From Takakia lepidozioides (taxonomy: Eukaryota; Plantae; Bryophyta), in contig CM060733.1 of assembly GCA_030704615.1 (NCBI GenBank), positions 30,690,001 through 30,754,000 on the forward strand: DNA of 64,000 nt, written 5' to 3'. The first letter of the stretch is position 1, and the number at the start of each line of letters is the position of its first letter. Both the position numbers and the translations under genes were made by a program. The notes under the pieces were generated by a model. The model was not told where the DNA came from. It ran no database searches and was given only the letters and a program-made list of their open reading frames with translations. Shown here piece after piece: positions 1 through 62,433 of the stretch.

Positions 1-194
1 TTGAATTCAACTATTTAGTTTGAATTGAAACAGATCGACTAAACAAATCTTGGTGACATAATTTTGTGTTTTGACAAGACAACTTTGATCTTCTAAATGT
101 TTCTATGGTGATAATCCATGTCTTTCTATCAAAAGACTTGAACCTCAGAAGGAGATGATCTGGCAGGGTTGCACGATTTCGAGTGTGGAATCTG

Positions 195-3053
195 ATGCAG
201 TTGCTCAATCGGCGTCACGGTGGCAAAAGTATTGGTCTTGGCTCATCCGCCATGACCACTGTGAATGGAGGTATAAGAGACCAATGGAGCCAGGAAGGAG
301 GCAACAAGGAATTTTGCGGCACTGCTGGGGATGTGATCACACTCTGTAAGGAGGGACGGTTGAAGGAGGCAGTTCAGACTTTGGATCTTTTGGACCAACA
401 AGGCATCCGAGCAAACTTGGAGGCCTATTCTTGTCTCTTGCAGGAGTGCGCCAAGGTAAAATCTCTGGCCGATGGCAAGCATGTCCATGCCCACATTGTG
501 AAAAGTAGCTTTGAACCAGACATCTACTTGTCGAACATCCTTGTCAACATGTATGCCAAGTGCGGGAGTTTTATTTCTGCACGGCATGTATTTGACAGAA
601 TGCATAAACGAGATGTGGTCTCATGGACTGCAATGATTGCAGGATATGCTAAACAAGGGCATAGTGAAGAGGCATTTGAGTTCTTTTGCCAAATGCAACG
701 AGAAGGTGTGAAGCCAAACGGGGTCACCTTTGTGAGCGTCCTCCATGCGTGTGCCAGCCCATTGGCTCTGGAACAGGGCAAGTGCATCCATGCACATATT
801 GTTCACAGCGGATTTGAACACCATGAACGTGTGGGGAGTGCCCTTGTCAGCATGTATGCCAGGTGCGGGGCTGTGTTGGATGCACGCCACGTATTTGACA
901 AGATACGTGAAAGAGATGTTGTTGCCTGGAATGCGATGATTGGAGGATATGTTCAGCAAGGGCATGGTGAAGACGCTTTTGAACTCTTTTGGCAAATGCA
1001 GCAAGAAGGCATGAAGTCTGACGTGGTCACTTTCCTTAACATCCTTAATGCATGTGCTAGCCCAGCAGCTCTGGAACAGGGGAAGCAAGTCCATGCCCAC
1101 ATTATGAAAGCTGGGTTTGAGTCAGAAGTCTCTATTGGAAATGCCCTCGTCAGCATGTATGCCAAGTGTGGGAGTGTTGTGGATGCGCTCAATGTGTTTG
1201 AACGAATGCCAAATCGGGATGTGATCTCATGGACGGCAATGATTGCAGGATTTGCTCAACAAGGGCATGGTGAAGAGGCATTTCAACTCTTTGAGAAAAT
1301 GCAAGCAGAAGGTATGAAGCCAAACAAGATCACCTTCATAAGCATTCTCAATGCGTGTGCAAGCCCAGTTACCCTGGAAAAGGGCAAGCAGGTCCATGCC
1401 CAAGTCATTAGAAGTGGGTTTGAGCGAGAAGTCGTTGTGGGGACGGCTCTTGTCAGCATGTATGCCAGGTGTGACAACATGTTGGGTGCGCGGCAAGTGT
1501 TTGACACAATGCCTAAACGAGATGTGGTTTCATGGAATGCAATGATTGCGGGATATGTTCAGAAAGGGTGCAGTGAAGAGGCACTTCATTTTTTCCAGCA
1601 GATGCAAGTAGATGGTCTAAAGCCTGACAAGGCAACTTTTGTTAGCATCCTGAGCGCAAGTACCAGTGTAGCAGCTCTGGAACAAGGCAAGCAGGTCCAT
1701 GCCCAAATCATCAAAGGTGGATTTGAAGCAGATATCTTGGTGGGAAATGCTCTTGTCAGCATGTATGCCAGGTGTGGAAGTGTGATGAATGCACGTCAAG
1801 TGTTTGACCATATGCCCAAAAGAGATGTGGTGTCATGGAATGCAATGATTGCAGGATTTGCTCAGCATGGGCATAGTAAGGAGGCTCTTGAAATCTTCTG
1901 GCAAATGCAGGGAGAAGGGTCTACGTCCGATAATGTCACTTTTACTAGCATTCTAAATGCATGTGCCAGCCTAGCAGTCATGGAAGATGGTATGCAGGTT
2001 CATGCCCACATTGTCAGTGCAGGATTTGAAGCAGATATCCGTGTAGGGAATGCCCTTATTGATATGTATGCCAAATGTGGGAGTGTGGTGAGTGCACGCC
2101 AGGTGTTTGAGAAAATGCCTGAACGAGATGTGGTCTCCTGGAATGCAATGATTACTGGATATTCTCAGCATGGCCTTGGGAACGATGCCCTGCTACTCTT
2201 TGAACAAATGCAACAGGAAGCAGTGAAGCCAAACAGGGTCACCCTCATTGGTGTTCTCTCTGCATGCAGCCATGTGGGCCTAGTGGATGAAGGCCAGCAC
2301 TACTTCCGCTCCATGAGTCGAGATCATGGAATTATACCCACAGGGGAGCACTATGGCTGTATAGTCGACCTGCTTGGCCGTGCAGGGCATTTAGATAAGG
2401 CAGAGGACTTCATCAACAACATGCCATTCAAACCAGATGGTGGAGTTTGGGGGGCCTTTCTTGGTGCCTGCAGAATTCACGGAAATGTGGAGCTAGCAGA
2501 GTGCGCCGCAAAAGATATTTTCAAATTAGAACCACAAGATCCTGGATTGTATGTTCTGCTGAGAAACATCTATGCTGCTGCTGGCAGGTGGGATGATTTT
2601 GTAAGGGTAAAAAGAGCAATGGAGGACAGAGGTATGAGGAAGGAGCAAGCACGCAGCTGGATTGAGGTAGAAAATAGGGTGCATGTGTTCGTGGTAGAGG
2701 ATACATCTCACGCACACACAGAGGAGATCCATGCTGAGTTGGAGAGATTGACTAAGCAGATGATGGAAGCAGGATATGTGCCAGACACTCGTTTTGTGCT
2801 GCATGATGTGGATCAGGGGCAGAAGGAACTCTCTCTTCGCCACCACAGTGAAAAGCTGGCCATTGCTTTTGGACTCATCAGCACAGCCCCTGGGACACAT
2901 ATTCGCATCATCAAAAACCTTCGGGTATGTCCTGACTGCCATACCGCCACCAAGTATATCTCCAAGATTGTCGGGCGAGAGATTATTGCCAGGGATGCCA
3001 ATCGCTTTCATCACTTCAAGAATGGGGTGTGTTCTTGTGGAGATTATTGGTAA
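195..3053 (+). CDS. PLS-class pentatricopeptide repeat protein with E1/E2 and DYW deaminase domain (organellar C-to-U RNA editing factor)
   Basis: Intronless ORF; first ATG at 195 (the ORF track starts at GTG 183). About 20 P/L/S motifs ([22 protein letters not shown]), then P2-L2-S2, E1, E2, HSEKLA, CPDCH and a terminal SCGDYW. Confidence 0.96.
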
Positions 3054-3929: not shown

Positions 3930-4410
3930 CATAGTGCAGCCGCAAAGGCCTAGGGTTTCTGGGTGGGACAAGCTAAGCCCGATTATAAGTTACCGGGAGG
4001 CTGAGGTGGGGGGAACTGCATGGCCAGATGTTTTCACGGCGCATTGGGAGTCAAGGCAAAACAACCTCGTGAAAATTTGAAGAGATACCCTGAGTCACTT
4101 GAAACTGAAAGGTGCCAATCTGCGAAAGGTGAGGAGGAATCAGAAAATGGAGGGCCACAAGTATCTGGAGTAGACTCGTCATTGTCAGTCTATTGCCATT
4201 GCGAGCTCATTGGGACCTGATTGGAATCAGGTGGTTGTCTTGCCACAGCAAGGATGATAATCTTTTTCGCAGGGGGAAGGTTTGCCTGCAATACACTGGA
4301 CGTGACGGTTCGCAATCTTGTGCTGTTGGCATCTTTTACTTCTCTTGTCAAAAGATCTGTGGGAATATCTAGCATTTTTTTCCTCCTGTCCTCCTTGTAA
4401 ATATTCCCTT
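3930..4410 (+). pseudogene. Fragment of the helicase gene 3' end (GW-repeat tail and downstream sequence), paralogous to about 25965-26540
   Basis: Shares GGGTGGGACAAGCTAAGCCCG and the peptide RYPESLETERCQSAKGEEESENGGPQVSGVD with ORF 25673-26365; contains indels. Confidence 0.9.
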
Positions 4411-4425
4411 TCTCTTTGCGACAGC

Positions 4426-4992
4426 AATGAAGTTAGGCAGAAAACTTCCCTGAACTTGTTTCCAGTCAGTGACATGGGGGAGGACATCTTGGCTGACCTC
4501 AAGGGTCTACCCACTCTCGGCACTAGACTGAAATTTAAACTCAGGGCAGGAAGCCTACCTTTGAACAGCAAACAGAAGCAGAGAGGAAAGGGAGAGTGCA
4601 ATTGCCCGTTGTGTGGGCAATCTGAAGACAGTGTTCATTTTCTGATACACTGTCCGGGGTTCTCTCACCAAAGAGACGCTCTCTTCAAATCTATCGAGGG
4701 AATTGTGCCTGTACCCTTGTTTACCAACTTTGAAAGTCTCGAGGCTGAGCCAAAAGCCCAGGCCCTCCTGAGGCCTAGTTTTTGGGCAAATCACACACAG
4801 CAGATTGATGCTTGTGTGAAGGGATTTCTAGAGGATATCTGGAAAACCCGGATTAATTCTATATATGATGGTAAGTCACACTACCAACGTCAGCCCCCGA
4901 CAGAGGTAGGTTCTGTTCCTTTGGTTCCCGCTCAAACTGGGCGCGGGGTCAATGGCCACAAGGCTACGGCAAACAACGTCTTATGAGTACAA
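4426..4992 (+). mobile_element. 5'-truncated non-LTR retrotransposon (family A): C-terminal CCHC zinc finger plus 3' UTR, no poly(A)
   Basis: Encodes KLRAGSLPL...CPLCGQSEDSVHFLIHCP. Nearly identical to 16012-16571. Flanked by the duplication TCTCTTTGCGACAG (4411-4424 and 4993-5006). Confidence 0.9.
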
Positions 4993-5006
4993 TCTCTTTG
5001 CGACAG

Positions 5007-5042
5007 CGGACGTTATAAAGCACCATTTCATTTCATTTCATT
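5007..5042 (+). mobile_element. Extreme 3' end of a second LINE family (family B) with a (CATTT)n tail
   Basis: GGACGTTATAAAGCACCATTTCATTTCATTTCAT; the same terminus recurs near 16995, 18590 and 20475. It is followed by a third target copy, TCTTTGCGACAG (5043-5054). Confidence 0.75.
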
Positions 5043-6149
5043 TCTTTGCGACAGTGTTGCTGTTTCATCCTATATCCTGGTAGAAACTCGTCTGCAGGAG
5101 TATGAAGGCCATTTTTACAGACTTTTGGATTCTGTGGGGCACCAGTACTTGTATACCTGGTGGAACAAGGGTTTCAGAGCATTAGACCCTTGGATGTCTC
5201 TCAGAGTTGACAGGGTGGAGTTAGGCTCAATTCCATCTACAAACGCCAAGGACAGGATGTGTTTTGAATCAGGTCCCTTTGTAAGTATTACCAAAAATAC
5301 ACATGAGAAACATAAGAGTGGGTCTGTAAAAGCTCCCAACAATCACCAAGAAGGCCTGAGGCCTGACGGTGTACAGGCAGGCAAGTTTCAGGTTGTACAT
5401 ATGCTGTTTTGGTTTGCCAGCCATCAGGGCCATTGTGCTAAGCTTGTCTGAGTTTATTTGGGAATGGATTTGCAAACGGATTCCATGGTATTGCTATACA
5501 CATCAAAACTTCTTCCCATATGCGATAAAATTACGTGGAGTATTATTTCTCAAAAACAATGGAATGCACAGGCCACCATATGTTCTCCACAATTATTTTA
5601 CGATTCTGTTTCGCAAAGTGACAATTATAAAGAAAATAGCTGACTAATCTGACCATCCCCCCTCAGGAAAAGCAGGACCCTTCATCCCATCCTATGCTTG
5701 TGGTGCATTCCCTACTTCTGTTCTTCTGATCTGTTCTTCTAAAGAATCCTTCTACTGTTGTGGCGACCTCCTTAGATCGCACTCTTCTTCTGTACACCAC
5801 ATGCATTGTTTTCGACTCTCTTCCCCTGTGCCACCCTCCAGCAAAGTATCTTGTACTACAATGACCTATGCTTTTAAAACCAAATACTCACAGCAGCTTG
5901 CTTAGTCTCTCTTCAGTTCCGCTATTTCCAAGCAGTCTCAGGACTACATCTCTTTCGCCGCTTGAGCTGTTTACATTTTCTGGAGCATCTTCATATCGAT
6001 GCTGTGCGAGCTGCTCCCATCTCCACTGTAGCTCTGCAAGCTAGGTACTTTCACTCTGCTCCGAGTTGTTCTAGTGCCATGCGCTGCTTGCTTTGTGCCT
6101 TCAGTCAGGCCACGGGTTAGCTGAGAATCTTCAGTGAAGTCCGTGTAAG

Positions 6150-6370
6150 AATTTGCCTAGCCGTCATATTAACAGTAACAAGAGAAGAACTTTGAGTGCT
6201 GGAGACTGAACAGCCTTCTTGGATTGGTTCCTCAGCGACTCCGGAATGCAAAGATGCTGCAGAGTTTTCCCGAGGGTACAACCGACCTAGACCAAAATGG
6301 ATCTGGAAAACTAGGGAGCCTGTTTTGGCACTGAGTATAAAGAACTGTGTGTGACATCTAATTATGAGTA
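6150..6370 (+). pseudogene. Fragment of helicase exon 3, paralogous to about 22768-22995
   Basis: ATTTGCCTAGCCGTCATATTAACAGTAACAAGAG and GGAATGCAAAGATGCT are shared with the helicase; the frame is disrupted. Confidence 0.85.
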
Positions 6371-7475
6371 TTACAGTACACATTCACATTTGGAGGAGAA
6401 CGCGTTGAGCGATGGGTGAAGCGAGCTCTTTGGGACTGAGTGTTGCGACACTCTGGTCTCTTTTTGATGATTAGATTCGTCTCTTTTGCTGGTTGACCCT
6501 GCCTTTTAATGTAACTGCATATACATGTTATGTTGTCATCAAGCTTCCGGCAGGCCTCGTATCTGGTTCTTCCAAGCTGGTAGCGCTTAGCTCTAGAAGG
6601 TGGAGGCCGTTTGCTTCCGTTTGCTGCTTCCTCTGCTTCACCTAGTTTTAGAGCTTGTTAGAACTTTTGTTACACAAGGCACAGCGCCTGCTACCGTAGT
6701 TGGGCTTTCTGAAGAGGGTACTTGTTGAATTCGTGTCCAGAAAGCTTTGAAGATTCCTTTCAATTCTCGACTGTTTCAGGCAATTTCGCCCAAACGTGTT
6801 TTGTTTCCTTAACTGGAAGCGAAAGGTGACGGAAAGAGAGGTCGTTGAACTAAAAATAGAAACTCGAGTAAGAGAAGGTACTAAAAGTAGATGTTCAGGT
6901 GTCACGGGGCTCCTCCGCGTATAACACACTGTGGGAGTTTTGCTCGCTGAGTGTGTGTAGTTCAATGTGTTGGTCTGCTCTGCACTGCACGTACACGAAC
7001 GTTCGCGCAGGTCTGCAACAAGTGAACTTGAAATGGTGGGCGGGAGTGAAGGCAAGGTGTTGAGCCGATTGGGTGTTGCAGACGGACGCAAACGCAGGTT
7101 GGAGCAGGTGGACAGGGATTGTGACAGGAACATACACAGACTTAAGCATATGGGGTTGTGGAATGATGAGCGTGAAGTGGATATACGCAGGGTTGCAATG
7201 CTCCGTGTCAGCGAGGACTATGATGGGCGTCTCAAATTGAGCGATGATGGACGACATGAGAAGAAGAGACGCATTCATGAGCAATTGATCGCCCCCAAGA
7301 ATCCTGTAAGCGAGGAGGTTGCTAAGCGGGAGAGGGACGTGAAGAAGAGGGACGACTACTCAAGGAGTTGCTCACCCTGGACTGTTACGGTTTACCGCGT
7401 CAGGCGTACATGGGAACGTCTCAAGGCATTCAGCCACCATTCACCATGAGTTGTATCCCCTGATGTGGATAAATA

Positions 7476-19959: not shown

Positions 19960-20505
19960 GTAGCACAAAATGAAACTGTGATATATATAAAGTTGAATGA
20001 GGAGCATACTTTCGGCAAAGTGAGGAAGACACATAGGTGGCCCAAGTAAAAGGAGGAGAATTTCCTGCTTGATGGTCACAATTGTGGAAGCGGCTTTAAT
20101 CAGATGCTGCTTGGGGTGGTTGACTTTTTCAGGGCAAAGCCAAGGTTCCATACTCCGATGTTGTGAGCACCTCTGTGGCAAGGTCTGTCCCTTTTCCTTT
20201 CTATGCCCAGCTTGCACCGGGCACAACCTGGAAATTGAAACTGAAGAACATGTCTTCTTTTATTGCCCTCTGTGCTATGAGATCCGTGGGAGATTCCACT
20301 GTTTATTCCGTGGGACTCAATCTGTCTTCCATTATGAGGATCAGAATTGCTTGGCAGCGTACCTGCACGAGGTCTTGACCCTTAGGCAATCCCTTGCTTT
20401 TTGGCTCTGATTTTGTCTCCTATATCTCGTGTTTTTTTCCCATTTGGTCCCATAAGCTCTTTGAGTTTTCCACAGACATTATAAGGTAACATTTCATTTC
20501 ATTTC
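19960..20505 (+). mobile_element. Degenerate family B LINE 3' end with CCHC zinc finger and (CATTT)n tail
   Basis: Encodes CPACTGHNLEIETEEHVFFYCPLCYEIR, then ends GACATTATAAGGTAACATTTCATTTCATTTC. The 5' boundary is approximate. Confidence 0.75.
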
Positions 20506-20708
20506 CTACCATCTTATTCATAAACTTGTTTTTGTTTATATTGTGTAGCATCTCTCCTTCTCTTATTAATTTTTTGAGAGGAATGAACCAAGGCCTTCTG
20601 AGAGATATCATTGTTGGCAGTTACTTGAGAAGAAATCAAGCATACAGGACTACAAGTGTTGATCACGTGATGAAGTAGACAGCCATCTGTCTTCGAATGT
20701 CGTAAAAA

Positions 20709-23700
20709 ATGGGAGACGACTTAGAATGCTGTGGCTGGATGCAACCAAAGGACATCAAGTACACACAGGATAGCATAAGCTACTACTTCAAGCGTGGCCC
20801 CCCAATTCCAGGGAGGCCATGGGGGGACGAGTCATTAAAGAGCTTACTGGAGAAGCTCAGTGCAGGAAAGATGGACGTGGACGAGATACCTCGGATTCGA
20901 GTCGTAAAATACAAAGGGCACTGGAACACACTCGACAACCAGCGCCTATGGGTGTTTAGACAGTTGGGCTGTGCCATCCCTGTAGAAATTCTTGACCATC
21001 CCACCTCTGAGTTTTTCTCCAAGCTATCAAGGGGAAACGGAGACGGTGAATCCATCCAAATTACAGAGCCAGAGAAGAAGGGTCAATCACATGAGTACAG
21101 GTGCAAGCTGGGTCTGATGAATCGAATGCTATGCTGGTCTATGGTAGATATATTGGCAGCCTTCGGCGATGGCCCTCATGTTGAAGAGGTTAGTTTTTTA
21201 CTGAGAGTATGAAAATTAAAGAGTGGGTTTGTGATATTGAGCCAAGTTAGTCTGTTGGCTGCAAAAGTAGTTACTCTTGTAGAGAAAAAGACCTTCATGA
21301 CTCATGAATGCTTGTATTCTAATGGAAACTCCGTGGTGATGAACAGATGGTTGATATCCCCCTCCAATTTGCTTCCCTAGAGGAATACCAGGAGGTTCTT
21401 AGCTGCTGGTTACTAGAAGAGTCACGCACAAAATTCCAACAAAGCTTATTCAAGATTTCAGATATGCCACAAGCACCCGTAACTATCGACAGCGATATAA
21501 AACCCCTGGGTAAGCGGAGTGTGTTGAAGAAATTAACAGTGACAATTGAATCCAAGTCTCTGAAGCGAGGCAGAAATAAGGTCAAAGCTTTATACAAACC
21601 CAAATCCTCCGATGTTGTCCTTCTCTCTACCATGCTACCCGAGCATGTGCGCGAGCTTTTCTGTGACGAAGAGTATTGCATCCTTGCCTTCATTCAGGGA
21701 GAGCAGTTTTCTTCTGAAGACCAACAGGTACTTGATGCCATTGTGTTTGCAAAGAACCATGGATCTGTGTACAAAGAACTCAAGACAGGAAACAAATCAT
21801 GGTATGCCGTGAAATTGGATAGCCTGACTACAGCGCTGCGAATCTGGGAAGGTCTCCACCAGCCCCAAGCTACACCATTGGTACAATACATTCTTCAATA
21901 CTCCAAAAAACAGGTGGGCCTCTCACCTCTCTTGCGAGAATCAGTGATCCAGATTCTGAAGCCACTTGACAGGAGGACAGAGTAGAGAAGGATGCATAGT
22001 ACCAACAGACACAGATTGCAATGGATGATTTCAAGAATGGTTGATTAGTAAAGTTATCTGAGCAACAGACTTTGCCTCGCTCTTACACCCTTGCTTTCTT
22101 TCTGGCAGGATATTGAGCAGAGCATTTGCAACTCCCCAGAAATGCAATGCCTGGAGGATCGAATTCAAAAGTACTGTTGTGGTGCACGGGGTCTGAACCT
22201 ATCGCAAACAGAAGCTGTGAGAAGTTCAATTCTAGGCCTGATGGGGAGAGACAGTGGCCCCCTTGTGAGGCTCATTCAAGGACCTCCTGGCACAGGGAAG
22301 ACCTTCACATTAAGCTCCCTTCTCTCAGCTATTTGCTGCTTGAGTACCCGTATTCTTGTCTGTGCACCAACAAACACAGCTATATATGAAGTCGCCAAAA
22401 GGTTTATTGTTCAGAAACAGTCTGACGAGAGAAAGGGTCAATCAGAATTTGAAATTTCTCATTTCTGTAGGGCTCATGTTGCAGAGGTTCATGTGGAAAG
22501 GTGCCCTTGTGAGCCCATTGGGATGGGTGACATAGTCATGATTGGGAATGAAGACAGACTTGTGGTAGAGGGAGCTCTAATGAAAAGAATATTCCTTCCA
22601 CTTAGACTGAAACGGTTGCTTTGTGCCTTCAGTGAGGCCACGGGCTGGGAAACATCAGTGAAGTCCTTCATCAAGAGGTTGTTACAAATGTCAACGTCCA
22701 ATCATGATGAAGGAGCTCTGAAACACTTGGGCAAGAAAGTGATTGAGCATGGTGAAACATTGTGTAATGATTTGCCTAGCCGTCATATTAACAGTAACAA
22801 GAGGAGAATTCTGAGTGCCGCTGTGGATACTGTGAAAGAGCTTCTTCAATTATTTCCTCAGCAGACTCTGGAATGCAAAGATGCTCCAGAGTTTTCCCCA
22901 GGATGCAACATAGGCGAAAATGGATTTGGAAAACTAGGAAGTTCTGGCACTGAGCTGTTTTCTGAATTGACAGAGACATTTCTCCAAATTATGAGCTCAG
23001 AGCCTGGATATGGCATGTTCCCTCCTTCTGCAGCTTCATCATTAGAATGGTTGGAGATGGAATGCATGGAGAATGCTTGCCTTGTTTTTTGCACTGTCTC
23101 CACAGCAGGCCAACGATCGTTGAAGCTTGGCTTGGTGTTCAATTGCGTGATAATTGATGAGGCTGCACAGCTGGTAGAAGCAGAGACTGCTATTATCACC
23201 CAGATGAAGGAACTGAAGCAGATCATTCTTGTTGGAGATCACAAACAGCTACCGGCCACAGTCATCAGCCAGGTATGAACACTTCTTGTTCATAGGTGGC
23301 ATGAAATCATTGCATTCGGTGTAGGAGTTGTCTTTTATAGCATCTCTATTACCTGGTCCTGCCTGTTTTAGGAGGTTTCCATAGTGCAGCCTGTGATTTC
23401 AAGGTATTCTGCAACCCAAGTTTGCACCGAGTCTGACTTGCTCTGTGTGTGGCCGGAATGTTCCCAGCTCGCGCAGAAACATGGCTATGGCCGTAGCCTC
23501 TTTGAGAGGCTCCAACTGCTTGAACATCCAATTGATTTGCTGAATGTGCAGTATCGCATGCATCCCGCAATCTGCCACTTCCCTAATATCCAATTCTACA
23601 ATGACGAGTTGAAGAATGGGCCAAATGTTCTAAGAGAATCTCATGCCGATGCCCCATTCCAGTACGACCTCTATGGGCCTTATGCCTTCATTGATGTCAA

Positions 23701-26365
23701 TGACGGTGTTGAGGAGAGAGCTGGTAGCAGCAAGAAGAATCTTGTAGAAGCGGAAATTGTTGTTCACTTGATTGGCAGAATACAGCTTTCAGGTAGCAAT
23801 CATCTCCTTCTTTTTAGACAATTGCGTCAGGTAAAGAAGAAATGGTCCTCAAGTTTTAGACAGCTTTCAGAATTGGGTGTTCATTCCATTTAATGCCCTG
23901 GTTAAAAAGTTGCAAAACACCACATATGAGTTTGGCAGATTCTATAGGGGTCTGTAATGCGCTCTCTTCCACTGCTGTTGCCTGCAATGAAAGCAGCTAT
24001 TTGGGTTGTCTGTTCCCTCTTGATTGCAGCTGTTGGAATTGTTAACTTAGTGGTTGCTGACTGGCAAGTTCACGTCAAATCCAGTGTGTGCAGCATTCGG
24101 CGATCTTCATGGGCTTGATAACAAACCCGTGAGCATTGGGGTAATATCTCCATATGAGGGTCAGGTAGAGATTGTTAAGCAGTGCCTGAAAAGCAGACGC
24201 ACTTCAGAAAGTCCTGGATTAGGATTGGACCTCATTGATGTGGAGGTCAAATCAATCGATGGCTTCCAAGGGAGAGAAAAAGATATCATCATATTTTCTG
24301 CTGTCCGAGCAAATAGAGCTGGCAACATAGGCTTCTTGGACAATGAACGCAGGCTAAATGTTGCACTGACTCGTGGCAGGTGCTTACCTTTCTACACCCT
24401 GATTCGTCCCCTTCCCAACTGCCCGCCCCCATTAGAGGTTTTATAAATCTTCCCTTTGTCTAGTGGTTTATTATCTTGCCGGTGAGCTGCCCAATTCTCT
24501 CTTGTCATGAAATTCCTTGCTCGTTCCTTGTGTCTTGATTCTGTTCATACCTTTTATGGCCACAAGGCTGGAAATAGGGTAAGATGACAGTACATGCTGA
24601 AGAGACTAGACTGAGCAAATGAAGGTGAACAGTCAGAAGTGGCAAGGCCAAGGGTTATGCCTTTGGATAGCAAGCAGCAAATACCAAGGGGTATTCTCAG
24701 AGCAAGGGAATCCTCAGGGAGGATCTGATGTGAGTGTCTGGGGAAGGAGAAACACTGACCTGTTCTTGAGAAACAAGACTGACAGCATAGCATGCTAGAT
24801 GAAGTATGGTACTCCTTGGCAAGTAGCAAGATGAGGATTCAAGATTGGGTGTTTAACTTGCTCATATGGTGACCATTAAGAGTCTGGTTTTACTATGATA
24901 AGACTGGACTGTGATAGGTGATCTTCCTTTCTCATAGTACACTGTGCAAAGCTGATATACTCTTCCAAGCACTGCCACCTCCTAGTGGGTGTATGTTTAT
25001 GGAAAGTAGATACACCCAATATCCAAGATTTTAGCCATGTACACATTCTCCTCCATCAAGAAGCAAGGGGTGTTTAGTCTCCGCATTGGCACATGGGCAT
25101 TGCAGCAGTGAAGTAAGACGTTACTCACCTGGAAGGGCCTTGATTCATTGACCAAATTATTTTCCTCAAAAGAAACGACTTAGTCTGAGCCATGTGGAAA
25201 GGCTGCAGCAACTGGGTTGTCACAGCTGCTTTCAGACTTTCATTTAAGCCACTGATTGCAATTGCAATCAGGGCATTGCCTCTTCTAGACTTCACAACTT
25301 TCAGAATGTGGTTGACAGGTACTCTCTGTGGATTCTTGGACGCGCCCTGACATTGACTGCCCAGAGCAAAGTCTGGAGAAATTTAATTCAGGCAGCAAAG
25401 AAAGCGAATTGCTATGTTGATGCTTCCTGTGATGAGAAGATCAGGGGAGTGATATGGAGTTCGAAGAGGGAGGTTGAATTAACGTGTGCACCTGAAAGAG
25501 TGGAAAAAACTACTCGTGGAATTGGCAGGGGCAGCAGCAGTGAGATGAGCCAGTTAGCAAATGGACAACAAACCAGAGAGGTTGGTATGACTAAACTGTC
25601 TTAGCAGTACTTGCATATTTTTATCTTCCGTTGTTGCTCTCATAGTACTTGGTTTAGTCAATTGAGAATCACTTGCAGGGTGTGCTGGGCAGATCCCGGG
25701 CCTTGTCCCTCCTGAAGCCAGTTGAAGTGATAGAGCAACTAGCAGCTGGTACAGTTTGGAGGCAAGGCCCAGATATATCTGGATGGGACCAGCCTTCAAC
25801 CTCCATTGGAAGCTCCACAGAGCCTAATTGGAGAGAGCAAGCAGCAGCTGGTCCGGTGTGGCGACAAGGACCGGATATATCTGGATGGGACCAGCCTTCA
25901 ACCTCCATGGGAGGCTCCACAGGACCTAATTGGAAAGAAGTGAGGGAGCAATCAGTCGCTGTTATGGTGCAGCCGCAAAGACTTAGAGTGTCTGGGTGGG
26001 ACAAGCTAAGCCCGATTGTAAGTTACCGGGAGGCTGAGTGGGGGAAACTGCATGGCCAGCAGTTTTCATGGCGCACTGGGAGTCAATGCAGAACACCTCA
26101 ACGTGAAAAGTTGAGGAGATACCCTGAGTCACTTGAAACTGAAAGGTGCCAATCTGCGAAAGGTGAGGAGGAATCAGAGAATGGAGGACCACAAGTATCA
26201 GGAGTAGACTGGTCTACAGCAGTCATTGCCAGTTCTATGGGACCTGATTGGAATCAGGTGGTTGTCTTGCCACAAGTATCTGGAGCAGACTGGTCTACAG
26301 CAGCCATTGCCAATTCTATGGGACCTGAAAATCAGAGGGTTGTCTGGCCACGGCACGGATGGTAA
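20709..26365 (+). CDS. SF1 SEN1/Upf1-like helicase (DUF6469-like N-terminus, AAA_11, AAA_12) with an N-terminal ParB/Srx-like domain and C-terminal Trp/GW repeats
   Basis: Phase-compatible GT-AG exons: 20709-21188, 21347-21913, 22109-23272, 23468-23792, 24094-24379, 25319-25580, 25679-26365. Motifs GPPGTGKT, CAPTN, DEAAQ, GDHKQL, SLFERL, QYRMHP, ISPY, IDGFQGRE and RRLNVALTR are intact. A further short 3' exon (26512-26585) is possible. Confidence 0.9.
25740..26330 (+). repeat. Coding tandem repeats in the helicase tail
   Basis: Two 102-bp units (AAGxVWRQGPDISGWDQPSTS...PNW) and two about 81-bp units (PQVSGxDWSTA...MGP). Confidence 0.85.
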
Positions 26366-27727
26366 TCAGGGGGAAGGGTTTGCCTGCACCTTGGAACCCT
26401 GCAACACAATGGACGTGACGGTTCGTAATTTTGTGATGTTGGCATCTTCTACTTGTCTTGTCACAAGATCTCTGGGAATATCTAGCATTTCATTCCATTC
26501 TTTTCCTCCAGGTCCTCCTTGTAAATACTCCTTTTCTCTTCCAGGCGAGCGAGTTTACCTCCCAAACAAGAACTCTGGTACTTAGGTGGGCACGACGCCT
26601 CCTTGTAAATTGCGCTTCCCTAAGTGTAGCACCCCCAACAACTGCGACAGCCTTGTTATTTCAACCTGTCCTGGTAGAAACTCATCTGCAGGAGTATGAA
26701 GGCCACCGAACAGACTTTTGGATTCAGTTGGCCACCAGTACTTGTGTATCATATGTTTTGGTTTGGTAGTCGTTAGGACCACCAGATGCATTATTTCTGC
26801 AATTGCCAGGCTCTCTTCCCCTGTGCCTGCCTCCAGTAAAGTGTCTTGTACTGCAATGACCTGTGCTTTTAAACAAAAGACTGACAACAGCTTCCTTAGT
26901 CTCTCGTCACTGCCTCTATTTCCAACTACAAAAGTAGTCTCCTACATCTCTCTCACTTGCTCCTAGTTGTTTTAGTGCCATGCGCTGGGCCTTCATCTTC
27001 AGGGTAACTAAGAATCTGAATGTAAACAACAGAACCATCTTGGAGCATTCTAAATAATCTATGCCCTCAAACTGTTGAAGGACCCAGTGTCGTGGTCCCA
27101 CTGCCGCTATGGACTATTTGTACCAGGCAGCGAATTTGTGGGGATAATGGAGTCTCTTTCCCCCTCTGACTTCGAATCCGTCTCCGACTATGACTACTGT
27201 CCAGAACCTTCATTGTCCCCAATCTCAATTATGCTCTTCATCTCGTGTCCTCACAGACCACAAAGATGTAAGATCTGTACTCATTAAGTACCTCAAACTT
27301 GAAAGCAGGTGTTTGGAAATGCATGTCAAACACGGGAGCCAAATTGCTCAGCCAGAAGAAGAGTGCTATCTAAGGAGATAGCCACAAAGTTACTGAGAAG
27401 AAGTAAGAGGGGCTGTAGATTAGAAGAAGAAAGGTAGGGGATTGTGTACATGCAACAATACTAGCATAGAATGGGATGAAGGGTCCTGCTGTTAGTGAGA
27501 GTGGATGGTCAGATTGGCAAGCCATGTTCTTGATAATTGTCAGTTTGAGACACTGAATTGTACAAACCACTAATTGTGGAAATCATATTGTAATTTGTAA
27601 GGGCTGCTGCATCCCTCCTGTTGTTTTTCAGAAATACTCAATGTAATTGAGTAACTGTATTCTCGGCAGATGGGAAGATTAAGTTTTGATTGGATACAGC
27701 ACCGCCATGGAATCCCCAAAATAACCG

Positions 27728-46399: not shown

Positions 46400-49300
46400 A
46401 GGGGGAGGGAGGAGGAGGCGCGATGGCGGAGCTGCGAGACAACCTCCAATGGTCATCTGAAAACTTCTTCCATCTCTATCAGATCCTATCGACTTCCTGC
46501 TTGCTTTACTTACACCAAATAGCAAATACTCCCAAGCTTAGCTATCAAGTGATATGCACATTACAAGTTTTTGTTTGGTTCTTTTTCAATACTTTCTTCT
46601 ACAGTGTTCATCTTAACATCCTGCTCCCTTTCATCTCCATCTTCGCTACCTGTATCATCCCTAATCCTCCCACCACAGCCGTCTTTAGCTTCTAAGCCGT
46701 TCGCTTTCTACAGTGACGTTTCCCGCCTATACCCCCCTCCTCTACTTTTTCCGCCAACCCCTCTCTTAAGATCCATATCTCTCACAACCAGCAGAGTCCT
46801 TAAACGCTTTCGGAAGCAACCACCTACGTAACAATGAGAAGTTGGCGACTCGGGGGAACACCAGAGGGCAGCAGAGTCAGTACAGAAGACCCACCCCGTC
46901 GTCTGGTACAGGCTTCTTTATGGCACACCAAGCTCGATCCAGGATAGCTTTTGCCAATGGTTCAGTAAGACATCCCTCCCCTCCCATTCCCACCAACCCT
47001 CTCTCCCCTCCCCAACCACTTCTCAAAATGCCCAGGTTAAACTCCTGCATTCCAAAACTTTCCGAACCCTCCAATTTTGGAGGAACCACCAGTAGACTGG
47101 GAGGAAGAGAGCGCTCTTAATCAAGATGATCTGGACAAGGACTACCCCATGATCAACATGAACATCTCGGAACTGCAAAGGAGAGTCACAACAATGGAAG
47201 AGACAGGTATCCTCATTCACTTTCCGGGGAAAAAAGTGGATAGGGCAACAGTCAGGGATTGGGCCATCAGACACCTTGGCGGTAATGGAAAACTGAGGCA
47301 GCTGTTCTGCCATGCCAAAGGAAGGGGGTTTTTCTCTATCATCTTTGAAACAAAAGAGGCTGCTAATGAGGCTTTGATGTTTAACCCTCATACCAGGGGG
47401 TTTAATGTCAACATATTTCCATGGTCTCCTAGGATGGGGAACAGGAACGGAAAGTTGTGGGGCCCCCGCATCGTCTCAGTCCCAAAGATCCCAGATCAGT
47501 ACTTGGTGAACTTGGCAGACATTGCAAACCATTTCGGGTCTTATCTTGGATGCTTGGCTGTCTTTGACCCCCAAATGTGCACACACAACCTAAGACAGGA
47601 CCCAACATGGAAATCAGTAACTATTGCTTCCCGACTTCATGAAACTGGAAATGCCAAATTTGTCTTGATGATGCCGGATAAGGATATTCTCCCGCAATTT
47701 GTCAAACTGCCAATAGATGAGGAGGGCAATTACTTTACAATCCAACTCATAGAGGATACCACCTATGCGGCTTGCTTCAACTGTGGCCAGTTGGGACATC
47801 TCATAATCGACTGCCTGGCAGCCAAGCGCAAGTGAACCCAGCCCATGACCCCATTCAAACCACAGAGACAGGAACAAGGAGGGGGGCCAGAATCAACAGC
47901 GGAGCACTGGCAGGAATTACAGTCTCCCACACCACAACCCGGGCCTGCAACAATTCCAGGAGGGCAACAAACCCGGCACAAAACACCAAATGACCCTCTA
48001 CAGCTCAGATCATGGCAAAGCCCCGGAAAAGAGGAGACACCCAAGGATCCGATGCAAGAAGAGCTGATGGCCCACCAGCAACAGATGAATGCCATCACAA
48101 AAGGGAAAGAGAAACTTACGGAAACACAGCAGCAGGGGGCATCTATCGGCCAAGGAAAAGGAAAGCATCAGAGTAGCTCACCCCCAAGAGTAGTCAAATT
48201 GACCCTCCCTACCAGTAACTCCTTCCCCAAAATCACCACTGGAATCGCTTGTAATTCCAGGTTTGCTAACAACTGTCTCCAAATCGGCTCATTCCCACAC
48301 CTAAACTTGGTGGGATGCTCAGCACTGGATATTGTCGACTCCCCGAAGGCAACATGTGTGACACCCTTGATCATCGAAAAAGCAAACCCCCGGCGGACGA
48401 CTGGGAAACGGTCGAATCATTATGGATAACATCAGCAGATCTCAAGCATTTCCTGCAAACCAACCCACCCAATACCAATTCGTAAATTTTGTTCAAGGGG
48501 AAAATTCAGCAATTCTTCCTCAAGCAACAAAAACATTATTCACTTTCACCCCTCACCAAAATCTCATGGGGGGCGTACATGGAAGACTATCCTGGACTTA
48601 GTGTCAAACCTTCAACCCACATTCTAGCTCTCATGGAGGATGCAGAAATTTATGCCTCGCCTCCACCGATAGAGGCTATCTAGACTTATGAGGACCTGCT
48701 CTCAACCCCCACAGGGAGTCACAGTTTGCAAATTCGAAACTAGGATACCCTGATAAATGGGTTTCAGTTGCTGGGAGCCCACTTGGACTCTGAAGTGGAT
48801 GGGGAAAATTACAGAATGGAGGTTCAAAGGACAAAAGATCATATTAATGGCACCAGACGGACAGATCACTCTCACTCTTCCTCAGACTCCCAGGTGGAAT
48901 CGTCTACGCAAGAGGAGAATCACAACATGATGGACTCGGTGAAAGGAGCCAAACAAGTATCCTCCCCAACAATCATTGACACAACCCAGGCTAACTCGCT
49001 GCCAAACTCTCAAGTGACTTCTCCACCCAAGGTCCTAACTCCCTCATCTCCACCTTCCCCAAACAAGGTACCATCCTCTCTCTCACCCTGTTTCATTTAT
49101 CAGGTCTTATCTGGGAACCCTGCTAGATGCTGGATGTTATGCGAGAAAGAGAAATACGTGGGGGGGAAGCAGGTCAGACATAGGCTACCAGTGTTTGATT
49201 TGCCAGAGAACATACCCTCTGGAACTCTTCCCTCTGATGGCTCAATCAGTGAGAGATACCCTGGTTTTAACGATCTTTTCAATGCGATGTTCTTCCCGAC

Positions 49301-50420
49301 TGAAGCCTCGGTTTTATTTGTAACCATCTCCAAAGTGTCTACAGAACAATTCCTTTCATCCCATGACCTACCCAAAAACACAAAACCGAGAGGGGTTTTC
49401 ATACTCATCCAGAATAAAACTCGCAAGCCCCCGGACAATTATGTCTGGAAAAATTCCCTACGACCAAGAGACAATAGGGTTAAATTCTTCTATCATACTT
49501 CTAGGCTATCAAATGAGACTGTCAACCTCAGCCTACCTCGACCTGCCAATGATCTTTAACCTCCATTCATGGAATATAAGAGGGTTGGAAGCAGACCCAG
49601 CTTCTCTATAAAGGCTGAAAATCAGAACCTGGCTGACTCCCTTCCTTGCAAATCATTCCATCATATTCCTGCAGGAGCATAAACTAGATCAAGGGAAAAT
49701 AGATAGCCTCACTGATTTTCTATGGCCATTAGCTAACTCCTTATGGAAACCCACTTCCACGGGTACGAAAGGAGGTACTGCAATACTTCTTTCACCTACC
49801 ATTCAACTGCTCCTCACTACGCAGGACACCTGGCTCCCTAGAAGATTGCAATTTTGTGCCTTATCCCTACCCAACTCAACAGGTCCGATTGGGCTGGTGA
49901 ATATCTATGCACCCAACGATTCTACTGACAGAGCAGAATTTTGGAACACTCTCAAAAATGAGGGAACAACCTTCAATAGATAGTTGGATATTGTCCGGAG
50001 ATTTTAATATGGTGGAGATGCAAGAGGATAGAAGAGGCGCGGGGTTATTTACCTCAAACCCAAAAGAAATGGACCAGTGGTTCAACTGCATGCAAACACA
50101 CAACCTCACAGAAGCAGTACCAATCTTTGGACAGTCATCAAACATCACCTTTACCTGGTCCAATAACCGCTCTCAAGCATATCTAAGTATGGCTCATCTT
50201 GATAGAGCTTACCTTTCCCTTGACTTAGTCCAATATGCTAAGAGAGCCCCTCAAGAACCAATACCCTTATGCTTTGACCATGCACCAATTACCCTCTCCA
50301 TAACCCTACCAGATTCTTACAGAAGGGGTAGAGGCCTTTACAAAATAAATAACCTCCTCCTTAAGCTGTCAAGCTTCAAGCAAGGCCTGCTAAGGTTTGG
50401 ATTCAGGCGGGAAGTGACCT
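46400..50420 (+). mobile_element. L1-clade LINE, 5' part (ORF1 and the APE endonuclease of ORF2), disrupted
   Basis: ORF1 has GRGFFSIIF...FPWSP and CFNCGQLGHLIIDC. ORF2 starts at about 49549 with SWNIRGL, LQEHKL, KGGTAILL, NIYAPND, GDFN, LDRAY and DHAPI. Stops and frameshifts are present. Confidence 0.9.
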
Positions 50421-50689
50421 CCTGAACCCTACGCATCTCTTCCTGGCCAAGCTGAAGGTTGTCAATATTGAAAATGTCATAAACGGTGATATGTGTGTAA
50501 GGGTGACACACGCAGGTAATCGAATGACTATTATCTTGTGGGTGAGAAGAGCTGATAGGTGGTTTCGAGCAGGAACTATATCACGTAGGCTTACACTAAG
50601 TGGTAGAGAAGAGGTTCACGATGGAGAGAGATGGACAGTCGGTGAGAACCGCCACGAATAGTTTCCAAAGCACGTAACGTTCATAGGTT

Positions 50690-59689: not shown

Positions 59690-62433
59690 GAGAGAAGTGA
59701 ATGTGGAAAATGAGGAGGAACTAAGAATGGTGAAAGTAGGGCTGACTTGGAGCCAAAATTCTTTGAGGAAACTAAGAGTCTGTTTATCAAATACAAAGAC
59801 GTATTTGCTTGGAGCTATGAGGATCTGAAAGGGATACCACCTGAGATCTGCTAGCATAAGATTGAACTGGAACCAGGGTCAATACCAATTAAACAGACAA
59901 GGTACATGATGAATCCCAACTATGCACAGAAGGTTGGGGAAGAGATCAAGAAGTTGGCTGAGGCTAAGTTCATATACTCGATAGAGTATACAACTTGGCT
60001 ATCACCCATTGTGATAGTTCCCAAGAAGAATGGCAAAATAAGAGTTTGTGTGAACTATAAGAAGTTGAATGATTGTACAAAGAAAGATCCATTTCCATTG
60101 CCGTTCACAGAAGCTGTACTGGACACTGTGGCAGGCCATGAAATGTATTCATTCATGGATGGCTTCAGTGGGTATAACCAAGTGCAAGTAGCGGAAGAAG
60201 ACCAATGAAAGACAACTTTCATCACAGACTGGTGCTTATGCATACAAAGTCATGCATTTTGGACTTTGTAATGCCCCAGCAACTTTCCAGAGAGTGATAA
60301 GTGAATCTTTCCATGAGTATCTGGATGATTTTATGCAAGTGTTCTTGGATGACTTTAGTGTGTACAACTCTAAGAATGAGCACTTGCAGAAGTTGGAGTT
60401 ATGTTTGGCCAGATATAGGATGAGAGGTCTTGGCCTGAATCCAGAAAAGTGTGCTCAGGGGTACTTCTGGGACACATTGTGTGTAAGAAAGGACTGCTTG
60501 TGCTAGAAAGACAGAGGCTATTAAAGCCTCACCACCACCAAGTAACGTTAAGGGTCTAAGGAGGTTCCTTGGACAAACTACTTATTATAGAAGGTTTGTC
60601 AGACGGTATGCACAGATGGCAGCTCCATTGAGCAAGCTTTTGAAGAAGGATGCAATGTTTGCATGGACAGCTGAATATTAGCAGGCTTTTGAGGAACTTA
60701 CATTGTCAGTGACAACTACATATGTACTGATTAACCCTCACTGGCATGTGGTATTTCATGTACACTGTGATGCCTCAGGAGAAGCTTTGGGGGCTGTGTT
60801 AGCCCAAAATGTCACAGGAAACATAGATTCACCTGTGTACTATGCTAGCAGATTGTTGAACAGTGCTGAGAGGAACTATAACACTACTGAAAGAGAAGCT
60901 TTGGCAATGATTTATGCAGTCAAGAAATTCAAGCATTACCTATTGGGAAGGAAGTTTATGTTTTATGTGGATCATCAGACTTTGATTTATCGGGTGAACA
61001 AGCCTTTGATAAGTGGCAGGATAACAAGATGGTTGATAATCTTGCACGAGTTTGAATTCGAAGTTGTTTACAAGCCTGGCCGTTTGCATCTTGTGGCAGA
61101 TCACTTGTCACGTTTATCAACAGGAGAGCCCGCCACGGGAGTAGACGACCAACTACCTGATGCAAGTTTATTTGCAGTGGAGGTGCAGGGAAGTGCGGAT
61201 GATTGGTTAGATTGGTAGTGGCCAATCAGATACTACCTTACTCATGGTCAGTGCCCACCCAGTTATGGGAAGGAGTAGAGGAAAAGACTAGCTATCAAGG
61301 TTTTACCATACACTATGATAGGTAACAAATTGTATAAGCTAGGACCTGATGGAGTTCTTAAACGATGTTTGTACCACCATGAAGTAAATAAAGTTTTGGA
61401 AGAAGTTCATAAAAGAGTGGCTGGAGGTCATTTTAGAGAAGAGACTACCAGTAGGAAAATATTACTTGTAGGTTACCGGTGGTCTACTTTGTTCAAGGAT
61501 GTACACAAATATTGCAAGAGTTGTGATGAGTGTCAGAGGCTAGGACCTTTGCAAAGATCTGGGAAGATGGCTTTGCATCCTACGATGCCTACTGAACCAT
61601 TCCAGAAATGGGGATTAGACTTTGTTGGACCAATTAATCCACCAGCCAGTAATACACAGAACAAGTATATAATCACAGCCACTGATTATACTACAAAATG
61701 GGTGGAAGCTAAGGCTCTGAGGGACAACGCAGCTAAGTCCACAACAAGGTTCATATATGAGAACATACTCATAAGATTTGGCTGTCCCCTGGAATTTATC
61801 AGTGACCAAGGAAGTCATTTCATTAATGAGACCATAGAACTATTGACTAAAGAGTTCATAATTGTGTACATGAAGAGTACAACCTATTACCCACAGGGCA
61901 ATGGGCAGGCAAAGACCACCAACAAAATACTATGCACTATCTTGGCTAAGATAATCAATGCAAACAGAACAGACTGGGATACAAAGCTGTTGATAGCTTT
62001 GTGGTCATACATGACTTCATATAAAGTCACCACCAAATATACACCATTCCAATTAGTTTATGGTATGGAAGCTTTACTTCCAGTGGAATTCCTATTGCCT
62101 ACCATGAGAACGGAATGGGGAAGGAAAATGGAATTGGAGGATTCAACTAAAGTAAGGAAACATGAATTATATCATGTGGACGAAGTACGTGCTGATGCAG
62201 CAGATAACATGACCATAATTCAGATGAAGAGGAAGGATCAGTTTCATGAAGGTAAATTGAAGACTTTTAAGACAGGTGATTTGGTACTATGGTTGCAGAA
62301 GAAGAGAAAGATTAAAGCTTCTAAGCTTATGTCACCCTCGAAAGGATCATACAGAAGATGTATGATAACAACACAACCATGTTACAAACCATTAACAAAG
62401 AGATGTTTGGTAGAGTCAATGCCAATAAATTGA
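59690..62433 (+). mobile_element. Ty3/gypsy pol remnant (RT-RNaseH-integrase)
   Basis: Encodes WLSPIVIVPKKNGK, DGFSGYNQ, FGLCNAPATFQR, VFLDDF, CDAS, EREALA, GGHF, CDECQR, WGLDFVGP, SDQGSHF and PQGNGQA; stops and frameshifts are present. Confidence 0.95.

Follow-up and report, generated by a model that had tools for sequence, protein, structure and literature searches.

Tox-ParBL1 domains are described from bacterial polymorphic toxins. According to the text of Zhang et al. (2012, PMC3482391), they are predicted to adopt the ParB fold and are marked by a conserved Ser near the N-terminus and by a [NT][RT][RT] motif in which the latter two residues are mostly Arg; the type member is the Neisseria MafB protein NGK_2271, and the family is listed in Viridiplantae and other eukaryotes. 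The same fold characterises the ParB/Srx superfamily, which includes the ParB and Noc CTPases, sulfiredoxin, the SerK/SbnI kinases and the CdiA-ToxB ATPase toxin. DUF6469 helicases (PF20073 with AAA_11 and AAA_12, often automatically named 'probable helicase MAGATAMA 3') form a sizeable family in plants, and we know of no member with a described function. Here we describe a gene in which the two are joined. It lies in a 64,000-nucleotide stretch of the genome of Takakia lepidozioides (Bryophyta; assembly GCA_030704615.1, contig CM060733.1, positions 30,690,001 to 30,754,000 of the forward strand), which is called the window below, and it encodes a Upf1-like helicase of the DUF6469 clade that carries a Tox-ParBL1 domain (ParBL1) at its N-terminus. 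Judging from sequence comparison, the gene is one member of an old ParBL1-helicase family that occurs in mosses, liverworts, a lycophyte and a few bacteria of intracellular type.

Seven coding exons and one exon of the 5' untranslated region (5'UTR), at 20151-26365 of the window on the forward strand, encode a protein of 1259 aa. The coding frame is open throughout and ends at a single stop, TAA at 26363-26365, as found by reading the sequence, from the list of open reading frames (ORFs) and by script. All six coding introns have GT..AG borders in the sequence. Two small public sequence runs, X1 and X2, contain the locus, and their contigs were aligned to 20500-26450. After correction for offset, the joints in the X1 contigs are 21188/21347, 21913/22109, 23272/23468, 23792/24085, 24379/25319 and 25580/25679. 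These are six exact GT..AG joints, and all of the predicted introns have therefore been removed in real molecules. The acceptor of exon 5 in the transcript is 24085, which is 9 bases upstream of an alternative at 24094 and adds three residues. The seven-exon, in-frame structure of the initial annotation is thus confirmed, with this one correction to the start of exon 5. One X1 contig connects the upstream non-coding exon, exon 1 and exon 2, and an in-frame TAA at 20703 lies upstream of the ATG at 20709. The contig therefore starts in the upstream 5'UTR exon and not downstream of about 21100, and the junction between exons 1 and 2 is found spliced as predicted. A single mRNA runs from exon 1 into the helicase exons, which bears out the earlier view that the fusion is not an artefact of joining two genes. 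The locus is an intact, expressed gene of a moss-type plant.

The 3' end of the non-coding first exon is at 20151..20182 (+), followed by a GT donor at 20183. It was located from the 133-letter loose end of X1 record 1, of which the last 30 letters are unique at 20151-20180, and with 133 contig letters upstream of the joint the exon probably extends back to about 20048. The remaining 5'UTR (20621-20708) and coding exon 1 (160 aa) occupy 20621..21188 (+), where X1 record 1 spans 20619-21186 and is joined to 21345-21507. Two other X1 contigs depart from the locus at 21447 and 22644, which are not exon borders, and the departing letters map nowhere in the window; X1 also has one opposite-strand joint, 21515/21750. 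These odd contig ends may be transcripts of paralogues or assembly chimeras. All searches and structure predictions used single exons as queries and the tree was built from the exon 3 region; exons were joined, using the 24094 acceptor, solely in the script that counted frames, stops and motifs.

The N-terminal domain of about 120 aa is a Tox-ParBL1 domain with a predicted ParB/Srx fold. It covers residues about 8-122 (20730..21074, +), as identified using phmmer, an AlphaFold2 model, Foldseek, VIA-align and the ESM Atlas. Exhaustive phmmer searching of 1.84 billion representatives returned 417 proteins at E <= 1e-3, with values down to 1e-40 within the family and 3.8e-6 to a haemagglutinin-repeat toxin. 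In protein P0121, which has Fil_haemagg_2 repeats, the domain is at 780-886 of 887, forming the last 107 residues. Exon 1 has no Pfam match even at E = 10, and Pfam assigned no family to 56 members, with a single weak match to ParB_N (E 0.13). A word-indexed search with residues 1-160 of P0038 returned the query alone. Sequence and profile matches in the PDB to STING (E 0.46) and to a solute-binding protein (E 0.33) were rejected as chance.

The 56 family sequences were aligned (alignment A1), and the alignment was used both for a hidden Markov model (HMM) and for the AlphaFold2 model. The consensus of A1 is P..IRY.Q.SIS..F; IP.IRVV; G.W..LDNRRLWVF; K....NDG.S. The model has a mean pLDDT of 86.6. 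The top 50 Foldseek matches in the PDB are all ParB, Noc, KorB, PadC, SbnI, SerK, sulfiredoxin or Atu1540, with a best E of 8.7e-4. VIA-align, run exhaustively over 48,161 chains, returned just 11 with Z >= 2; every row with Z >= 3.3 is of ParB/Srx type, including Osa, and the best are Atu1540 at 8.3 and Arabidopsis sulfiredoxin at 8.1. Both searches support the ParB/Srx fold first suggested from the sequence pattern. In the ESM Atlas, the nearest models are the C-terminal parts of PT-HINT, RHS, MafB and PT-VENN proteins, together with small unnamed proteins, at an rmsd of 2.0-2.8 Å over 103-116 residues. These neighbours, P0121 and the text of the 2012 paper (PMC3482391) all place the family at the C-termini of bacterial polymorphic toxins, as the initial annotation had stated. 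Prediction of a homodimer (residues 5-122, two copies) scored 0.00, which is evidence neither for nor against dimerisation.

Compared with the Tox-ParBL1 toxins, the window protein has sequence homology, the predicted ParB fold, the N-terminal Ser and N-x-R in common. It differs in that the toxins carry the domain at the C-terminus of a secreted protein, whereas here it opens a eukaryotic helicase that is intracellular; there is no evident immunity gene, and the middle Arg of the motif is replaced by Gln. Similarly, ParBL1 resembles the ParB/Srx superfamily (Z up to 8.3) in the order strand-strand-[motif]-helix, in the Arg that ends the GxxR motif and in having Gln at the Box I position, but it has no helix-turn-helix or dimerisation domains, the Gly of GxxR is Asp family-wide, and exon 1 does not match Pfam ParB_N.

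The rest of the protein, up to the tail, is a helicase. A long helix at residues 127-153 (21087..21167, +), identified from the secondary structure of the model and by comparison with seed plants, contains the L.WS block that opens the N-terminal module of the helicase. Exon 2 (21347..21913, +) continues with the IPxxF...LLEE block and a DUF6469-like region, which has a sub-threshold match to Pfam DUF6469 and 45% identity to the Physcomitrium patens protein P0172. Exon 3 (22109..23272, +) encodes RecA1 of a superfamily 1B (SF1B) helicase, with motifs I (GPPGTGKT, 22280-22303), Ia, II (DEAAQ, 23156-23170) and III (GDHKQLPATV), and matches AAA_11 at 2.4e-37. RecA2 starts in exon 4 (23468..23792, +) with motif IV (YRMHP) and continues in exon 5 (24085..24379, +) with motifs V (DGFQGRE) and VI (ALTRGR); these two exons match AAA_12 at 2.2e-21 and 5.3e-30. 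The helicase core ends in exon 6 (25319..25580, +) at YSLWILG..., where the translation runs on into the start of the tail. The borders of exons 2 to 6 are those of the X1 joints. The nearest solved chains to the core are Upf1/Nam7, IGHMBP2 and Sen1. Taken together, the intact motifs, the AAA_11 and AAA_12 matches, which exceed the Pfam cut-offs, and the nearest solved chains indicate a complete Upf1-like SF1B helicase. The N-terminal peptide and the WS / IPxxF / LLEE block quoted in the initial annotation are present in the sequence, and so is the full set of SF1 motifs that it reported.

The HMM derived from A1 was run over all fetched proteins to detect ParBL1. It finds the domain at the N-terminus of full-length helicases in Calypogeia fissa (1155/1156 aa and 2620 aa), in Riccia fluitans (1047 aa), in Selaginella moellendorffii (about 2600-2870 aa, with a second, UvrD-like helicase; for example EFJ34295.1) and in P. 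patens (LOC112275050 isoform X1, XP_024360768.1, 1167 aa). The P. patens LOC112275050 cluster is the closest full-length relative found, with 43% identity over exon 3 and 45% over exon 2, and XP_024360768.1 has the same order of ParBL1, DUF6469-like region and helicase. Another relative, at 54% identity in a different assembly, has an identical exon order. Some of the P. patens isoforms predicted by RefSeq (P0294-P0296) start at the equivalent of exon 2 and have no ParBL1, and others have truncated helicase ends. Exon 2 of the window gene also opens with an ATG, so that a product without ParBL1 is conceivable here.

Seed plants are different. None of the nine seed-plant DUF6469 helicases sampled (Cryptomeria, Lupinus, Hibiscus, Ipomoea, Capsicum, Mikania, Lithospermum, Vigna and Lactuca) has a ParBL1 domain detectable with the A1 HMM, in agreement with the earlier statement that the angiosperm proteins lack it. 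They begin at the WS block: most of them start at, or at most about 30 residues from, the FSWSL / IPxxF / LLEE block. This is the block that follows ParBL1 in the fusions, and the junction is thus native.

Fusions are also found in bacteria. One is in a metagenome-assembled genome (MAG) of Chlamydiia (JAGROE010000009.1), beside a second helicase and a Tn3 transposase, two are metagenomic proteins, and three further loci are in Proteobacteria, Coxiellaceae and uncultured-proteobacterium MAGs. In the Chlamydiia MAG, two Upf1-like helicase genes are in tandem (L003:1121-3838 and 3936-6881), of which the second is the ParBL1 fusion and is followed by the Tn3-family transposase; the two copies group together on the tree described below. 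In one uncultured-proteobacterium MAG (L008:5998-8808), the ParBL1-helicase ends in a CCCH zinc finger of eukaryote type and lies among GAPDH, transketolase and photolyase genes. This may be a sign that the protein binds RNA and that genes have been exchanged with eukaryotes.

The initial annotation knew of no description of this architecture. We found no paper that mentions DUF6469 or links ParBL1 to a helicase (the search covered the text of the 2012 paper, as distinct from its figures and supplement), and the architecture is undescribed in the literature searched. The same architecture is nevertheless present in public proteomes, as uncharacterised proteins such as XP_024360768.1 and EFJ34295.1, and it is not unique to this locus.

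A maximum-likelihood tree was calculated for the exon 3 region (40 rows, 396 columns, LG+C20 PMSF). The window protein, its relative in L001 and P. patens group together (100/100), the non-seed-plant fusions form a clade (96/94), and the plant DUF6469 helicases all fall into one clade (99/98). The window protein is placed inside this last clade and has the WS / IPxxF / LLEE block in common with it; both short forms and long forms (with the additional UvrD-like helicase) are also common to the two. The bacterial ParBL1-helicases are sister to the plant DUF6469 clade (99/96), apart from the SEN1-type and UPF1 rows. On the simplest reading, the fusion is older than the plant clade, and the seed-plant line has lost it.

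Such a loss could also be taken to mean that ParBL1 is a relic: catalytically dead, retained only to cap, structurally or by binding proteins, a housekeeping helicase that acts like SEN1/MAA3 in transcription or in R-loop control, and dispensed with in seed plants. Seed plants lost the domain yet kept the helicase, some predicted P. patens isoforms do without it, and the predicted catalytic positions are relaxed in plants (see below), all of which suit a relic. We nonetheless consider it improbable. The fold core and D76, N77, R79, L80 and K105 are conserved from bacteria to mosses, which argues for a retained ligand-binding function, and ParBL1 has been kept in both the short and the long (double-helicase) forms.

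The residues of the domain have been further analysed. In comparison with A1, the window protein keeps Q20, S22, F27, P61, I63, D76, N77, R79, L80, K105 and G113. The Q-x-S-I-S block reads T-Q-D-S-I-S, in which Q20 and S22 are the majority residues of A1. The family sequence D-N-R-R follows two strands and opens a helix in the model, and we take it for this reason to be the counterpart of ParB Box II (GERRxRA), that is, of the GxxR phosphate motif. In the window protein it is D-N-Q-R-L (20934..20948, +) in place of D-N-R-R-L. The first Arg column of A1 contains 51 R, 3 K, 1 H and 1 Q, and the window protein alone of the 56 has the Gln. The [NT][RT][RT] motif is accordingly N-Q-R, in which the first and third residues conform to the family; moss relatives have K at the middle position.

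The bacterial toxins and the bacterial fusions keep Q, S and D-N-R-R. At the same Q and S positions, P. patens has E and R, with D-N-K-R, and Riccia has V and K, with G-N-R-R; the Calypogeia short form has T and K, and Selaginella has Q and P. We read this as a probable relaxation of the constraint on catalysis in the plant helicase-fused copies, with the phosphate-binding core retained, and the variation at predicted catalytic positions is easier to reconcile with a regulatory module that binds nucleotide than with an active toxin. ToxB, a related toxin with a ParB fold, needs the terminal Arg of GxxR (R108) in order to bind and hydrolyse ATP (bioRxiv 10.64898/2026.05.05.722872). R79 of the window protein would correspond to this Arg.

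Our preferred reading, held with modest confidence, is of a protein in four parts, namely Tox-ParBL1, the N-terminal module of a plant-specific helicase clade with the WS / IPxxF / LLEE block and the DUF6469-like region, a Upf1-like SF1B core and a Trp-rich tail, in which ParBL1 is a nucleotide-dependent switch acting in cis. The helicase core would translocate along RNA or single-stranded DNA in the 5' to 3' direction, driven by ATP, like its Upf1/Sen1/IGHMBP2 relatives. ParBL1 would still bind a nucleotide or another phosphate ligand, since the GxxR-equivalent terminal Arg, D76, N77 and K105 are retained. It would function as a switch or sensor on the helicase and not as an autonomous toxin-like enzyme, since each plant short-form copy is changed at a predicted catalytic position, here by R78Q. 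The role would most likely be in RNA surveillance or genome conflict, as suggested by the toxin ancestry.

The same residues bear on whether ParBL1 is instead an active effector, an NTPase or nuclease as the toxin versions are presumed to be and as the initial annotation allowed, which the helicase would deliver to a target RNA or DNA. The protein would then be a single-chain analogue of bacterial defence proteins that combine a helicase with a nuclease, such as type II Mokosh. Bacterial fusions and toxins keep Q20, S22 and D-N-R-R, the window protein keeps all of these but R78, together with K105, and one toxin with a ParB fold is an ATPase whose toxicity extends even to plant cells; these points favour an effector. 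However, the near-invariant first Arg is Gln here, a change unique among the 56 aligned members, and Q20, S22 or both are gone from the moss and liverwort copies. We regard an active effector as possible but on balance unlikely.

The comparison with Mokosh itself adds little. The likeness to MkoA/MkoC is that in both a Upf1-like helicase is paired with a domain that could be destructive, and the MkoA profile of PADLOC matches the core. The match is, however, generic to Upf1-like helicases: the P. patens relative scores 230 bits, MAA3 247 and UPF1 itself 297. UPF1 and MAA3 match MkoA as well or better, and MkoA was rejected as a specific link. Mokosh has a phospholipase D (PLD) nuclease, whereas a Pfam scan of the exons found no PLD domain in the window protein. 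In addition, the bacterial ParBL1-helicases examined sit among housekeeping or transposase genes and not in a recognised defence operon.

A number of observations weigh against the preferred reading of ParBL1 as a switch, or against the framework in which it is set. The GGCHR motif of sulfiredoxin has a His at the position equivalent to R78. The equivalent position is also His in ToxB (10.64898/2026.05.05.722872). The window copy could still be catalytic despite R78Q, since the family Gln and Ser are kept, and the ligand, activity and role of ParBL1 are ones that we infer. Exon 2 alone matches DUF6469 (PF20073) at 1.2e-4 and 22.5 bits, which is under the Pfam cut-off of 27 bits; the relative P0007 scores 41.3 bits. 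Run X1 is only guessed to be RNA, and contigs spliced at GT..AG are what cDNA gives. Finally, the tree has long branches and is based on the columns of one exon, and does not settle the direction of transfer between bacteria and plants.

The last part of the protein is the Trp-rich, low-complexity tail encoded by exon 7 (25679..26365, +; 228 aa and the stop), identified from its composition and from X1 and X2 contigs. It contains 14 Trp (6.1% W), while G, S, P, Q, E, N, K, R, D, A and T together make up 72% of it. It has no Pfam match and no relative in a feature search of the ESM Atlas (recognition 811). A tandem duplication of 102 nt x 2 (25732..25938, +; 86% matches by TRF) is also evident from comparison of the peptides (34 aa x 2, with 28/34 aa identical). 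No similarity is detectable between the tail and those of the Calypogeia and P. patens relatives, and only short GPDW-like motifs recur; the P. patens tail is also shorter. The tail is thus young, lineage-specific and Trp-rich, and it is probably disordered.

The initial annotation described this region as a GW-repeat tail and proposed that it recruits Argonaute, which would make the protein a silencing helicase conceptually like SDE3/MOV10 with ParBL1 as effector or switch. SDE3 offers a precedent: it is Upf1-like, and its Ago hook is functional (Garcia et al. 2012, as cited in 10.1101/2025.10.18.683247). In SDE3/MOV10, as in the window protein, a Upf1-like SF1 helicase is followed by a Trp-containing C-terminal region. 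The high Trp content of the tail, its paucity of hydrophobic residues, its three SGWD motifs and its C-terminal HGW would all suit such a hook. The four GW and one WG found here nevertheless compare with a mean of 3.0 in shuffled sequences of the same composition (5 vs 3.0, P = 0.16), and two of the four GWs arise from the single recent duplication. Neither the Calypogeia nor the P. patens tail contains GW. An Ago hook is therefore possible but not indicated, because GW is at the level expected from composition and the tail is not conserved in relatives. SDE3/MOV10 also differ in having no ParB-like domain, and on the tree, which did not include SDE3/MOV10, the present helicase falls in the DUF6469 clade. 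In our view the claim of a GW-repeat tail does not hold, and a silencing helicase hooked to Argonaute is very improbable.

A wider proposal can be made. The ParBL1-helicase would belong to a conflict system and would have passed between the land-plant ancestor and intracellular bacteria such as Chlamydiia and Coxiellaceae. Bryophytes and lycophytes would have kept it as clustered, diversifying helicases that sense RNA or DNA in immunity or in the control of transposable elements, with the toxin-derived ParB domain as a nucleotide-gated effector or switch, and seed plants would have discarded the domain. We consider this scenario unlikely.

The surroundings of the gene are as follows. At 183-3053 (+) there is an intronless gene for a pentatricopeptide repeat (PPR) protein of 956 aa with an E motif and a DYW deaminase domain, of the type of organellar RNA-editing factors, which fits a non-seed land plant. 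Retroelement remains at 47077-50425 (+) comprise a zinc-knuckle gag-like ORF and further ORFs, of which those scanned have no Pfam match, and a stretch at 60703-62433 (+) encodes the RNase H and integrase of a long terminal repeat (LTR) retrotransposon. There are no paralogues of the helicase within the window, the other long ORFs being the PPR-DYW gene and the retroelement pieces.

The architecture is informative about evolution, and the fusion gives a testable context to two families, the DUF6469 helicases, which are without known function, and ParBL1, which is without biochemistry. This context rests on the presence of the fusion in the sampled non-seed land plants, on the bacterial fusions that are nearest to the plant clade, and on the loss in seed plants. 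Knock-outs and domain swaps are feasible in P. patens, a genetically tractable moss with a close homologue of identical architecture. More generally, the family adds a case to the idea that eukaryotes recruited polymorphic-toxin domains from endosymbiont-like bacteria, and to the idea that new uses have repeatedly been found for the ParB NTPase fold.

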